Source: Macrostomum lignano (Eukaryota). From it: a DNA stretch of 64,000 nt. Position 1 is the stretch's first letter; each line of letters begins with the position of its first letter. Positions 47,601-59,600 of the stretch are shown here, in pieces. The stretch lies in the NCBI GenBank assembly GCA_002269645.1, contig NIVC01000393.1:545497-609496 (forward strand), in the 5' to 3' direction. The position numbers and the translations under genes are program-made. Under the pieces are notes generated by a model. That model saw nothing but the letters and a program-made list of their open reading frames with translations, was not told the DNA's origin and did not search any database.

Positions 47601-50600
47601 CATGTCAAGGCTTACAAGGTTTGACAGGAGATTCTTTAAGATTTCAAGGATACATGTAGCTTAATTAAAAAAACGTGTATTGCATTTCTTTGGCTCCCCA
47701 ACGGGGGGCGTAGATTGCTAGTAATTGTGCTATAAACCTGCCGTCAGCTTACCTCGTGCTCATCCAGCATCTTCTGCACCTCATCAGCATGCAATGGCAG
47801 CCTATCCAACGGCTTTCCAGCTTCCTCGAGGTGAAACTTCATCGAATCGCAGAGCAGCTGAGCGTCAGAGTCCAACAGGCGGAATTCTTCGGCGAGAGGC
47901 TGAAGCTCGGCAAGACGATTGTCGATGCGAGATCGAAGATCGGCCGTCTGATTGGCTGATTCGCTGATTAGAAAAGATAAATAAGAGATGAGTAAAAGGG
48001 ACATTAATTTGATATTACACGGTACTATAATGGCTTGTTATATATATTTTTTGTTATATGTAGAGATATTATATTTTTCCTTTGTTGTCTCCCCAGCGGG
48101 GGGCTAATATGCTAGTACACTATACTAAAATCGTATCTTACCTCACTAGCGGGGGTTAACATGGCTATTCCACTATACTAAAATCGTATCTTGCCTTTCC
48201 AGCGGTGGCTAACATTGCTAGTCCACTATACTAAAGTTGTGTCTATTATATGGTGTAAAAGACCGGCCTTGTAAATAAAATGGATTTCGAAAAAAATTTT
48301 TTGACCTACCTTAAATTTCTTTGCACTTCTTCTCTCAAAGGCTGCTCAGAAATGTCCATCAGCGATTGGCCAAGATCCTGCAGGCTGGTTAAGCTGGTCT
48401 CAAGGCGCTCCACTTCCGGTAGAAGGCTCTGCGAGTTCGAATTTATTCATATATGAAATGCAAGCTTTGAGCAGTCAATTTCGCTGCCAATTTTTGACAA
48501 TATTAAAACATAATTTCAGATTTTATAACAGTTTATATCAGAGTCTGCCTACTCTCTTTGAATCTGTCTACTTTCTCTCTCTGAATGTGTCTACTTATCT
48601 CTTCTTATCTGTATACTTCTCTATCTGAGTCTGTCTACTTCCTCTCTCTGAATGTGTCTACTTATCTCTCCTTATCTGTATACTTCTCTATCTGAGTCTG
48701 TCTACTTCTCTCCATGAATCTATCTACTTCTCTCTCAGAATCTATCTACTTCTCTATCTGAATCTATCTACTTCTCTATCTGAATCTATCTACTTTTCTA
48801 TCTGAATCTGTCTACTTCTATCTCTATAAATCTGTCTACTTCTCTCTGAATCTGCCTAATTCTCTCTGAATTTGCCTACTTCTATATTTGGGTCTTCCTA
48901 ATCTCCCTGAATCTGTCTACTTCTATCTGTCTATCTACGTAATTCTCTTCCTTGAACCAGAATCCTTCTTTTTGATATCTACCTCTTCAACAAATCTATA
49001 ACTCAATCTATCCTTTCTCAATCCATCTTGACTGTCCTCCAAGGCCTCCCTAAACAACTTTCTCACGAGATCCGCAGCGGACACGGCCCTCCTTCGCCGC
49101 AGCACGCTCCGTTCAAGTCTTCGCTGCAAAGCCCTACTCGGCATGGGATCGTGGAGTCTGGGATTCCACTGCGATACTGACTGGCTGAGTTGCTGCTGCT
49201 GATCCTGCTTGAGCTGCCTGTCGGCTCCAGGCTTATTGCCCATTGTTTAAACTGATCAACTAAACACCAAATACAGAAACTGACAGGTTTCTTCAAGAAT
49301 CCGATTACTTCGAGGACTTTATTAATAGCTTTACACTATTAAATGCATTAAGTTTGTTCTTCTCTGCCAGACTGCAAGGAGACCTGCTGGCCAATAATTT
49401 CTGCTTCAGTTTCTCTCCCTCTCTCTGCAGTCCTATTCTTCCCCTCTGACCCGCGAAGCTTTGAGCGCGCGCACGGCTGGAGTGAGCTGTGGCTCTGGGG
49501 ACGGGGGTCACGAAGATGACGGCGAGAGACTTTGGCCAACTCTGTACACTGACTGTGAGTTATCGCCCCGTGCGACCCATATTAATATTTTAAACGACTT
49601 TATTCTATTGAAATACAGTAAAATAGATAGAAACTGAGTAAATTTATTGCCGAAAGTTTTAGGGTCAGATAGATAGACAGATAGATAGATAGATAGATAG
49701 ATAGATAGATAGATAGATAGATAGATAGATAGATAGATAGATAGATAGATAGATAGATAGATAGATAGATAGATAGATAGATAGATAGATAGATAGATAG
49801 ATAGATAGATAGATAGATAGATAGATAGATAGATAGATAGATAGATAGATAGATAGATAGATAGATAGATAGATAGATAGATAGATAGATAGATAGATAG
49901 ATAGATAGATAGATAGATAGATAGATAGATAGATAGATAGATAGATAGATAGATAGATAGATAGATAGATAGATAGATAGATAGATAGATAGATAGATAG
50001 ATAGATAGATAGATAGATAGATAGATAGATAGATAGATAGATAGATAGATAGATAGATAGATAGATAGATAGATAGATAGATAGATAGATAGATAGATAG
50101 ATAGATAGATAGATAGATAGATAGATAAATAGATAGATAGATAGATAGACAGATAGATAGATAGATAGATAGATAGATAGATAGATAGATAGATAGATAG
50201 ATAGATAGATAGATAGATAGATAGATAGATAGATAGATAGATAGATAGACAGAGATAGATAGATAGATAGATAGATAGATAGATAGATAGATAGATAGAT
50301 AGATAGATAGATAGATAGATAGATAGATAGATAGATAGATAGATAGATAGATAGATAGATAGATAGATAGATAGATAGATAGATAGATAGATAGATAGAT
50401 AGATAGATAGATAGATAGATAGATAGATAGATAGATAGATAGGGTACATGTAGATTAATACAGACAGAGCCAGACAAAAAATCAGACAGACAGACAGACA
50501 GACAGACAGACAGACAGACAGACAGACAGACAGACAGACAGATTCCCTCAGCAAAGCCAGCTCGCTGCCCTCTCCCCCCATCTGGACCAGCGCATTTCCT

Positions 50601-56600: not shown

Positions 56601-59600
56601 CACCGAAGTGTTATTGTTAGATCAGCAATTTTCAGATTGAGTCACAGACACCAAACAGAAGTTATTAATTTATTAATAAATAAAATATATCATAATTCTA
56701 ATAGACAGCGACAGCTGCATACACGACAAGAATATTTATAGCAGGATAGAGCGATACAACAGCAAGACTCGATAGGTAAAAATCTAGAAAAGCGATCAGC
56801 GGAACTAAACACTACACGCACTACTTGAAAGCGGTATGTACAACATTTTTAGCAAGCAAAATAGGTAATTTAAATTTAAAAGAAGAAAATTCAAAAGCAA
56901 AGAACAGCAGGTTGAGAGCGCGGCAATGTAGGCAGGACAGTGACAATATAGACATGACAGGTGTAAATGAATTGTGAATCAGAAATATATATATAGTGAA
57001 TGCACAGCTGCAAAATGAATAACCTGGCTTCGCTTCCTTGCTCAACATTCTTACTCAACTATATTTTTTTTATCATAAACAGCTATTTAAACTAACCTTC
57101 ACTTCTCAGCTAAACTTTGATTTCTATATTCTAATAAAACTGCTAGCAGTTGAATATTTTTTATTAGCCTGTTATAAATTTGTTAATTTATTCCACACAT
57201 AATAAATATAAGTTAGTTTTTTATCGTTACACGCTGGGAGTTTAGAAATTAGCAAAACTGTTTTGTTAATAAAGTAAAAGACAAAAATCTACAGAGACAA
57301 CAACATCTACTTGTTTTCTAAGAAACTAGACTATGACATTGATTTCTAGGAAAAAACAGTACAGAACTCACCCTCATGTAGTCCACCTGGTCGAGAGTCT
57401 GGGCCGAGGCGGCTGTCCGATTGTCCACACGCCGCATCACTGAGTCCACCTCGCTGTCCAGAGCTGCCTGCTTCTTGCGATACTCGGCCTCCACAGCCTG
57501 CGACTGCCTGCGCTGGCTCAGCGCTGAGTCCAGCTTGCGCAGCAGGGCGTCCCGCTGAGCTCTCAGATCCGGCCGGGCCTCCAACAGGCCTGGCGAGAAC
57601 GCTCGATTTGCCACTTCGTCTCTGAGCCGTTCCAAAGCCGACGCGTCCTGCAGCGAGTTGGCTTCGGCCTCGCGATCGCGCAGCCAGTCGGCCGCGTCCT
57701 CGGCCTCGGTGTCCACGCGTTCGAGGCCGTCGCGACGAAGTGACAGTTCGGCCAGTCGGCGATCGATTCGATCCAGATTGGACTGGAGTTTTTTATTGGT
57801 TTGTAGAAAAAGGATTTTAATGTTCAATTTATGCTACTACGAGCATAGTAGTAGAAAAGAACGTCACGTTTTTTTTCTAGAAAAATGTAGTATTTATTTT
57901 GTATAATCTATTTACAGTACGGACTAGCACTCTTTGGGGGAGGCAACAAAAAATGGAATACTTTTTGAAGAAAGTAAATGTAGATATTGACCTCTCAGCT
58001 TTGAAATCTCAGCAATTCCCCCAGTCAGCTTTGACATCTCAGCAATTCCCCCCCGTCAGCTTTGACATCTCAGCAATTCCCCCAGTCAGCTTTGACATCT
58101 CAGCATTCCCCCAGTCAGCTTTGACATCTCAGCAATTCCCCCCAGTCAGCTTTGACATCTCAGCAATTCCCCAGTCAGCTTTGACATCTCAGCAATTCCC
58201 CCAGTCAGCTTTGACATCTCAGCATTCCCCCAGTCAGCTTTGACATCTCAGCAATTCCCCCAGTCAGCTTTGACATCTCAGCATTCCCCCACAGTCAGCT
58301 TTGACATCTCAGCAATTCCCCCAGTCAGCTTTGACATCTCAGCAATTCCCCCAGTCAGCTTTGACATCTCAGCAATTCCCCCAGTCAGCTTTGACATCTC
58401 AGCAATTCCGCCAGTCAGCTTTGACATCTCTGCAATTCCCCAATGAATGTTTTATGTTCGACATGACGCTTCTTTTAGACATGACACTGCAGAAGTTTTA
58501 AACTAAGAGTGAAGTATAAATAGCTCCTTCAATTTTGAAATAAATGAAGCTGATACATCTCAAATACTACTTTAAGTAATTGGTACGTCATACCGAATAT
58601 TCTCATCCTGAATCAATAGTTAATTACCTGCAAATCGCGCGACACCTTCTCGGCCAAGCGACTGGTCTCCGACGGGCCGGAGGCGGCGGCCAGCAGCGGC
58701 GAAGGCGATCGCCGACTGCCGCCATCGAACATGCTGCCGCTGCCGCCGCTGTAACGTCGTCTGGCTGAAGCGGCCGCAGCCGCAGCCGCGGAGTTTCCAA
58801 CGACGCTTGGCGAAGTGCAGTCGCATTTCAACGCGGCGTTGACAATCTCGGAGCGCAGCTGGGTGAGCCGCGACTGCACGGCTCGGGCCTCCTCGGTTTG
58901 TTGTCGAGCCTCGTCCGCTGTGCGAACATTCAACGGCTCGTGGCTGGACCACCAGGACACGAGGTCCGAGTGTAGGTAGCGATCTGCCGCGGTTAGTACG
59001 TCCCGGTAAGACTTCCAACGCTGATGGTTCTCCGTTAGCCGCTCCTGCGAGTTGTGGGAAACGACAGAACTTGAAGAAGCGCCTTCAGCAACACCAGTAT
59101 TAGTGCTACTATCATTGTTATTGTGAATATCAGTAGTAGACGGATATTCTTGACGAGAATGGCTGGCAATGGCCGCTAAAGTGAAGAACATTGCTACTGT
59201 CTAAATCTAAATAGTTGTATATGCAGTCGTTAAATCGCCTTGCGCTCATCTTAAATGAAGAGCTAAAAGCAGTTAGCTAAAAATTCATTTATTATCTGTG
59301 GCTCGAAGACCCGACCGAAGTTAGCAGAGCCAACTTCCTACCGTCTGTGTGTATTTTAATTTAAAGTAGTTCAGTCTTTTGCGGAACCAAACTAACGCAA
59401 GCCGGCAGGGCATATAGATAGGCCGCGGGAACGGTTTTATTATCAGAACTGCGTTAAGCTATTAAAGAAAGAGTACACACTTAGTCCACTGAATGTACAG
59501 TGTCCAAACGCGCGCGAGTGAAATAAGCCAATGTACATTAGGGGGTGTCCCACTCCCGAAGTGTACATAGATTTTGGGGGTTTGTAAATTTGGACTAAAG

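Follow-up and report, generated by a model that had tools for sequence, protein, structure and literature searches.

We analyzed a stretch of 64,000 nucleotides (hereafter, the window) that forms the last 64 kb of contig NIVC01000393.1 of the flatworm Macrostomum lignano (assembly GCA_002269645.1, Mlig_3_7; positions 545,497-609,496) and reaches the contig end. Its reverse complement equals NIVC01000393.1 over the stretches that we compared (20,544 and 31,508 bases). One very large gene spans the window on the minus strand, with GC-rich exons (0.58-0.72) and AT-rich introns full of tandem repeats. In all likelihood, this locus is a nesprin-like gene of M. lignano that encodes numerous spectrin repeats with a membrane anchor at the C-terminus and that carries an alternative last exon in one of its introns, i.e., that between the exons termed here E5 and E6. 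All coordinates given below are those of the window, and the features are on the minus strand unless they lack an orientation.

The spectrin repeat (Pfam PF00435) was found above the cut-off in three exons, at 60080-60625 (E = 1e-14), 24247-25218, and 7666-8163, as well as within the GenBank protein PAA83973.1. Matches to the nesprin-type repeats (PF25034, Spectrin_SYNE1; PF24615, Anc-1) were weak, with a best score of 27.8 bits against a cut-off of 35, and the precomputed match of this type on the products of paralogs likewise carries a "weak" flag. At the other end of the gene, the C-terminal exons (4651..3716, 3286..3162, and 2658..2454) encode an acidic poly-Ala segment that is followed by a putative transmembrane segment and 24 residues. 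The hydrophobic 19-mer near the C-terminus averages 1.97 on the Kyte-Doolittle scale, and the 24 residues behind it include two Cys and end in ...SVKSQGLPY. Judged by hydropathy, this is the layout of a tail anchor, namely, one predicted transmembrane segment and a short luminal peptide (~20-30 residues) at the very C-terminus.

E5 (57782..57372; 411 nt, phase 0 to 0, donor AGG/GTGAGT) is a constitutive exon of the spectrin region and the last one common to all of the N-terminal models examined. E6 (48428..48310; 119 nt) starts in phase 0 behind the acceptor ctcgcag/AGC, is present in the chains of the predicted proteins A0A1I8I875, A0A1I8GC33, and A0A1I8HAN1, and is followed by E7 (47963..47753; 211 nt). 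No site varies in E5 or E6 among the three compared copies of the locus, namely, the window, L002 (NIVC01000161.1), and L003 (NIVC01003634.1), which are ~96-99% identical. The intron that separates E5 from E6 (57371..48429; 8943 nt) contains, in transcript order, a GC island, a (GACA)n array, a long exon, an AT-rich stretch with AATAAA, two minisatellites, and a (UGUC)n array together with a (UAUC)n array; these are followed by a unique stretch of moderate GC content with an ATG at 49243 and by a 22-nt minisatellite, after which E6 begins. An earlier note on this DNA had proposed the intron as the split point of a giant nesprin, and every element that it listed is indeed present on the minus strand. 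The split point itself is borne out as a real isoform break point, and transcript-derived coding sequences (CDSs) leave E5 for a terminal exon within the intron. A search of Rfam with both strands of the intron (E <= 1) returned nothing.

The alternative last exon (54596..53457) comprises 379 codons and a stop (53459..53457) and is preceded by the acceptor gtccag/CTG ATG. We were able to rebuild the exon chain of PAA83973.1 (Mlig001789g10, hereafter g10) exactly, as 63084..63007, 60595..60098, 59044..58628, 57782..57372, and 54596..53460 plus the stop; that this protein starts with an internal Met is a consequence of where the contig stops. The junction between E5 and the long exon (DYMR/LMDQ) and the same stop are found in PAA83973.1, PAA89195.1, and PAA50447.1, the latter two of which come from the two other copies of the locus. 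The GenBank models of this assembly are genome-guided (StringTie/TACO) and de novo transcripts from RNA sequencing, cut at experimentally mapped trans-splice and poly(A) sites (PMC5730564). At the level of these RNA sequencing-derived gene models, the terminal exon is used after E5 and contributes 379 further codons before the stop. Thus, the claim that the 379-codon open reading frame (ORF) is a spliced terminal coding exon attached to E5, yielding an anchor-less N-terminal product, is supported by three transcript-derived CDSs.

The same ORF might instead be an independent nested gene, which the earlier note had named as the outcome that would overturn its reading, or a chance ORF in GC-rich DNA. 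It does have an ATG of its own at 54593, it has no Pfam domain, and the GC-rich block holds long open stretches in its other frames too, of 255-327 codons where these share its strand and of 130-216 codons where they do not. We nevertheless consider this explanation hardly credible, because the CDSs at three loci splice E5 to 54596 and because the ORF behaves as a host exon in its codons, its indels, and its divergence. The GC-rich block (0.66-0.73) starts and ends exactly with the ORF, the frame of which outscores the other five on both codon measures (codon-usage log-likelihood and synonymous codons), and its synonymous-codon score of 0.137 falls inside the spread of 28 host exon segments (0.107 +/- 0.089). 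None of the three copies interrupts the ORF, and all of its indels are multiples of 3 versus 8 of 39 in the non-array part of the intron, although the indels of the long exon sit in triplet or hexamer repeats, which makes the in-frame test a weaker one. Variable sites among the three copies amount to 1.24% in the long exon versus 2.70% in the intron (p = 0.003), with 0.27% in E5-E7, and synonymous and nonsynonymous changes in the long exon stand at 7:7, where 72% nonsynonymous would be expected (p = 0.07).

Behind the stop, a candidate 3' untranslated region (UTR) extends over 53456..52776 and ends at the first downstream AATAAA (52781..52776); it diverges at an intron-like rate (21 of 680 sites variable). 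On the gene models, a transcript can splice from E5 to the acceptor at 54596, read 379 codons, and reach the stop, and we envisage that cleavage and polyadenylation would take place ~0.7 kb farther on, close to the AATAAA at 52781. Such a transcript would give rise to an N-terminal protein of spectrin repeats that is unable to reach the nuclear envelope by means of a membrane anchor. E6 and the exons that follow it would be expressed in other mRNAs, the 5' end of which would derive either from E5 (with the terminal exon skipped, giving the full-length form) or from a start within the intron at ~49.5-49.07 kb.

The tail that the terminal exon encodes is a basic sequence of 379 residues (pI 10.7), 52% of which are Pro, Ala, Gln, Arg, or Ser. 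It contains a run of eight His and basic clusters (KRPR..RRR and KRMRK), and one may guess that the latter could resemble nuclear localization signals. Single-sequence AlphaFold2 modeling gave the tail a predicted local distance difference test score (pLDDT) of mostly 31-49, with four short helices, compared with 70-95 for the adjoining spectrin part in the same run, and the tail is thus predicted to be mostly disordered. Pfam scans of the tail, the ATG exon discussed below, and E5 yielded nothing meaningful, leaving the tail without any family. The earlier note had described it as a motor-adaptor tail, a description that finds no support, given the lack of a Pfam match, the predicted disorder, and the absence from the tail of the W-acidic (LEWD-type) motif [LMIVT][DE]W[DE] of kinesin-1 adaptors; its two Trp lie in KKLWPYT and RPHWRSD. 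An exhaustive search of 1.84 billion representative proteins with the 378-residue ORF gave one match, a 2121-aa protein of M. lignano, the cluster of which consists of eight M. lignano proteins; no relative of the tail from outside M. lignano was found among those 1.84 billion. Word-indexed searches (with the ORF alone and with E5+E6+E7) came back empty, and we attribute this to a failure of the index and not to absence, as the exhaustive search did find the M. lignano cluster. On these sequence comparisons, the tail appears to be lineage-restricted.

Downstream of the terminal exon, the next GenBank CDS is PAA83972.1 (Mlig001789g11, hereafter g11; MRELKSAG...), which starts at 46110, inside exon E9 (46321..46004); E6-E8 belong to neither of the two adjacent GenBank CDSs. 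A TTGCAG motif lies in E9 at 46125, 15 nt before the g11 ATG, and is a perfect acceptor motif of the trans-splice type. About 30% of M. lignano genes receive a 35-nt spliced leader (SL) that ends in ATG (CGGTCTCTTACTGCGAAGACTCAATTTATTGCATG; PMC8629364), with SL and poly(A) sites serving as the points at which precursor units are cut (PMC5730564). At the 46125 acceptor, the SL with its terminal ATG would be in frame. In exon 44958-45231, g11 uses an alternative acceptor (LER/LAAALKD), while UniProt models take the full exon; this is likely an alternative 3' splice site by which ~29 residues are removed. An enumeration of splice motifs for the 1018-aa GenBank product gave >57,000 solutions and was dropped. 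Farther on lies a giant stop-free exon (35780..27939) of 2614 codons that consists mostly of coding tandem arrays (33-nt x94 at 28486-31577, 48/72-nt at 32230-33851, and 33-nt x23 at 34035-34799). The downstream unit is annotated at only one copy of the locus. In L002, the annotation leaves the 10 kb after the terminal exon (30943-40942) free of genes, and equivalents of E6-E10 are present there at 93-98% identity.

A start of the C-terminal unit within the intron had been proposed from an ATG-bearing first exon (49243..49067; ATG 49243 in aaacaATGg, 59 codons, donor CTC/GTGAGA, in phase 0 as is E6). This claim stands in part. The predicted protein A0A1I8I875 has the chain 49492..49451, 49231..49067, E6, E7, E8 and reads .../PGADRQ...SAADL/SLLPEVE, so that in this predicted model the donor at 49067 is indeed joined to E6. 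The proposed exon is, however, not the first one in that chain, and the acceptor used there (aataag/CCT at 49231) splices out the ATG at 49243; in addition, none of the 12 M. lignano proteins compared starts with MGNKPG, as a product of this ATG would. The ORF of the ATG exon is kept in L002, where it has lost 6 nt in frame and differs further by a conservative and a synonymous change. The 42-nt exon that opens the A0A1I8I875 chain (49492..49451) begins directly after AG, has the donor CGG/GTCAGA, and is invariant in the three copies. These small exons, all of which run from phase 0 to phase 0, could represent an internally started mRNA, cassettes of the full-length mRNA, or a trans-spliced 5' end; as full-length cassettes, they would imply that the A0A1I8I875 model could have been broken at the (GATA)n array, the plus-strand name of (UAUC)n.

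Several observations weigh against the reading of the locus as one nesprin-like gene with a full-length product and an alternative last exon. The call "nesprin-like" was made from architecture alone and family membership is to that extent a tentative assignment, as the Pfam KASH model (PF10541) had no match at E <= 10 in the assembled C-terminus. Moreover, no KASH peptide among the PDB sequences matches this C-terminus, which has GLPY in place of the PPPX end. The junction of E5 with E6 (DYMRSLLP) occurs in 0 of the 12 M. lignano proteins compared, Pfam places no spectrin repeat across that junction when E4-E8 are joined, and the structures that Foldseek retrieved from the PDB with a model of E5-E8 were only generic bundles of long helices, none of them at E <= 0.001 and without a significant match to solved spectrin structures. 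Three older predictions (A0A1I8GC33, A0A1I8HAN1, and A0A1I8IAP0) use most of the long exon as an internal exon, and the exon may accordingly not always be terminal. Furthermore, tandem repeats have broken up the GenBank models: PAA83972.1 stops at 34603, within a 33-nt array of the giant exon, and is followed by five tiny, spurious CDSs (64-71 aa) called at ~31406-29004. The separation of g10 from g11 could therefore be partly an assembly artifact. The names of the UniProt fragments (KASH-, GAR-, SH3-, and PH-domain-containing) were not used as evidence, and domain scans of the sequences so named found none of these domains.

The full-length protein and the internal promoter are both what we infer from the locus. 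The earlier note had E5 and E6 joining seamlessly within one spectrin repeat; the in-frame, phase-0 join (QVDYMR/...) is real, while its placement within one repeat gains nothing from Pfam. By eye, the two exons meet at what would be the passage from helix A to helix B of a repeat (DSVMRRVDN...QVDYMR/...), which is a resemblance only, and the joined E5-E6 sequence is predicted to be helical across the junction, with a pLDDT of ~90. A competing explanation, possible but clearly the less probable one, is that there are two genes and no full-length protein, i.e., that the ancestral nesprin has been functionally split and the 379-codon exon is the invariable end of the upstream gene. The downstream anchor gene would then be expressed from an internal promoter or by SL trans-splicing of a long precursor, and in the latter case an SL ending in AUG could supply the start codon at a phase-0 acceptor, be it 49492, 49231, or E6. 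This explanation would fit the separate GenBank CDSs for g10 and g11, the missing E5/E6 junction, the beginning of A0A1I8I875 directly after the AG at 49492 in phase 0, and the TTGCAG motif just before the g11 ATG. Conversely, the acceptors at 49492 (ccagag) and 49231 (aataag) misfit the reported trans-splice motif [T/C]TNCAG, which is also absent at E6 (ctcgcag), and the gap of 5 kb from the stop to E6, though partly filled with repeats, is far above the 1-kb repeat-adjusted threshold for operons. The phases of E5 and E6 are compatible, and their join is predicted to be helical. In addition, g10 and g11 both carry the transcript-cluster prefix Mlig001789; given that transcriptional units are clustered under one prefix at >=95% identity (PMC5730564), the common prefix suggests at least one assembled unit that extends over the two halves.

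Another view of the long exon, which we regard as improbable, is that it is mainly a giant internal cassette, of which ~314-321 codons are spliced on to E6, and that the stop-terminated form is an unspliced variant; a disordered segment would then be inserted into the full-length protein. Such a frame-keeping splice is drawn in A0A1I8GC33 (...PRQHQP/SLLPEVE, donor after 53655) and in A0A1I8HAN1 and A0A1I8IAP0 (...DSRRF/SLLPEVE, donor after 53634), and a GTCCG donor is found also at 36968, where it is used by the predicted UniProt model P0010. Yet, the two donors differ and are weak (CCA/GTGCTG and TTC/GTCCGA), the models come from an older, fragmented assembly, and all three break off with E7, which is also where contig NIVC01003634.1 of the current assembly ends. 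By contrast, at three loci, the GenBank models derived from transcripts continue through the long exon as far as its stop. Accordingly, the internal-donor models look like frame-keeping predictions rather than evidence, and we retain the reading of the long exon as an alternative last exon.

The intron is further marked by three tetranucleotide arrays. In transcript sense, these are (GACA)n at 55553..55291, upstream of the terminal exon (Tandem Repeats Finder [TRF] period 4, 65.5 copies, 84% matches); (UGUC)n at 50542..50483 (TRF period 4, 15 copies, 100% matches); and (UAUC)n at 50442..49667 (TRF, ~194 copies). The repeat units had previously been named on the plus strand, and the order in the transcript is (GACA)n and then (UGUC)n(UAUC)n. 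These are the only period-4 arrays in the window, and runs of the four units occur nowhere outside the intron in the two other copies. Perfect runs of (UAUC)n sum to ~180 copies in the window and L003 versus ~60 in L002; (GACA)n is present in all three copies but variable in length, with perfect runs of 20, 17, and 5+5. The (GACA)n and (UGUC)n arrays are complementary, and RNAduplex predicted a pairing of -127.7 kcal/mol over ~66 bp, compared with -23.9 +/- 10.1 kcal/mol for random intronic 76-mers. Such a duplex would bracket the terminal exon and its AATAAA.

One could postulate that (GACA)n/(UGUC)n pairing in the pre-mRNA places the terminal exon, along with its poly(A) signal, in a loop and thereby favors splicing from E5 to E6 or farther downstream. 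Energy and position speak for such a bridge, in that the arrays bracket exactly the terminal exon and AATAAA and are the sole period-4 arrays of the window. On the other hand, array lengths vary freely between copies, and the copies are only ~1-4% diverged, so that their common arrangement is uninformative on selection. The downstream arm lies 2.2 kb past AATAAA, and cleavage could precede its transcription. Tandem repeats are also plentiful here, with 35 arrays covering 32% of the window versus 24% of the E5/E6 intron, and the pairing is a computed prediction. We therefore find the bridge very unlikely, and no better a prospect is the extension by which a length-polymorphic microsatellite RNA bridge would set the ratio of anchor-less to anchor-bearing nesprin. 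The earlier idea that the microsatellites act as an RNA switch and a DNA boundary is speculation, of which the complementarity of the arrays is the real part; most likely, the micro- and minisatellites around the exon are no more than the repeats with which this genome is ordinarily loaded.

A further element, which is unconfirmed, is the cassette-exon candidate (56025..55912; 114 nt, ttgcag/.../GTAAGG, open in phase 0). The one point in its favor is that it forms a sharp GC island (0.64 versus ~0.3 in the flanks). It is used by no model and is found in 0 of the 12 M. lignano proteins compared, and its pattern is at chance level: composition-preserving local shuffles of the intron gave 2.1 +/- 2.0 phase-0 open segments of the form CAG...GT[AG]AG, and those observed are at two donors, 55912 and 49067. 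The candidate is invariant in the three copies (0 of 114 sites variable), which for so few sites falls short of significance (p = 0.08 versus the intron). Codon statistics cannot judge short exons such as this candidate or the ATG exon, as the true exon E6 scores negative on the synonymous test. The regions of both are single-copy within 155 kb and are not dispersed repeats.

The arrangement was previously held to be unfamiliar, a judgment that is contradicted by well-described nesprin loci. In human nesprin-1, one and the same exon boundary has a 3' end on its upstream side, after exon 82, and a 5' start on its downstream side, at exon 83 (PMC3388047), and the idea of a single break point is therefore not new. 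Drosophila Msp300 gives rise to at least 11 isoforms through the alternative use of promoters, splice sites, and terminators (PMC11230431, citing FlyBase), and its CH-containing KASH-less and CH-less KASH isoforms are functionally distinct (PMC11230431). The flatworm locus resembles SYNE1 and SYNE2 (Rajgor et al. 2012, PMC3388047; Duong et al. 2014, PMC3981789), which are giant spectrin-repeat genes with many internal 3' ends and 5' starts, with N-terminal KASH-less and C-terminal KASH products, and with unique residues from the intron after the last common exon. Unlike the human ends, which are produced by read-through into a retained intron and add few residues (e.g., 8 aa), the flatworm end is a separate spliced exon of 379 residues; its tail has no orthology outside M. 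lignano, and its KASH motif is unrecognizable. Moreover, the human isoforms were verified by rapid amplification of cDNA ends (RACE) and PCR, whereas those of the flatworm are known from annotation only. With Msp300 it has in common that both are invertebrate nesprin or nesprin-like loci and that both have giant exons with lineage-specific tandem repeats (cf. 35780..27939 in the flatworm). Yet, the exon structure of Msp300 is different, no sequence relation to the flatworm tail was found, and SL trans-splicing is not present in flies.

More generally, the terminal exon corresponds to a standard alternative last exon with intronic polyadenylation, i.e., one with its own 3' splice site, stop, and AATAAA that competes with a downstream 3' splice site, and differs only in the length of the unique coding part and in the flanking complementary arrays. 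The locus also resembles the SL- and poly(A)-resolved units of M. lignano (PMC5730564, PMC8629364), in that same-strand g10 and g11 with a common prefix are the output expected of TBONE from one cut precursor. In contrast to unrelated cistrons, however, they are halves of one ancestral protein, and their spacing is far greater than the typical operon spacer of ~100 bp. SL trans-splicing may be involved at this locus.

The name of the locus was not found in the papers searched or in the supplements of PMC5816591. The flatworm locus is undescribed, but its isoform class is known and its core is already in GenBank as hypothetical proteins; what distinguishes it are the long, spliced-in, lineage-specific tail, the possible involvement of SL trans-splicing, and the complementary arrays around the terminal exon. 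In terms of annotation, two neighboring GenBank entries named "hypothetical protein" (PAA83973.1 and PAA83972.1) and, with them, several fragments in UniProt are pieces of one nesprin-like locus. The anchor-less isoform class of vertebrates and flies exists in a flatworm too, which suggests that this class is old or has evolved repeatedly. We consider the biological value of the finding to be modest: it is real but ordinary and leaves current understanding unchallenged. Since M. lignano is tractable to transgenesis, the locus could be used to ask whether SL trans-splicing can replace internal promoters for C-terminal nesprin isoforms and what a disordered tail of 379 residues does on a spectrin-repeat rod.

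Some minor features were seen around these exons. L003, a copy that is otherwise ~99% identical, has a 1-nt deletion in E7 near the contig end (equivalent to window position 47807), which reflects either a frameshift of that copy or an error of assembly. A dispersed short interspersed nuclear element (SINE)-like sequence with TAGTATAGTGGACTAGCA...CCCCCGC occurs at 48089-48235, between E6 and E7, as a 53-nt x2.8 tandem, and at ~54800-54850, upstream of the terminal exon, as a single copy; it has no match in Rfam. The intron between E7 and E8 contains a telomere-like interstitial (TTAGGG)n of ~10 copies at 47443-47498. Finally, a Cys- and Trp-rich open stretch (GLQGGNACWCGQSHGNHG) at window positions 1-266 resembles part of another, neighboring gene, possibly a WSC-like one.

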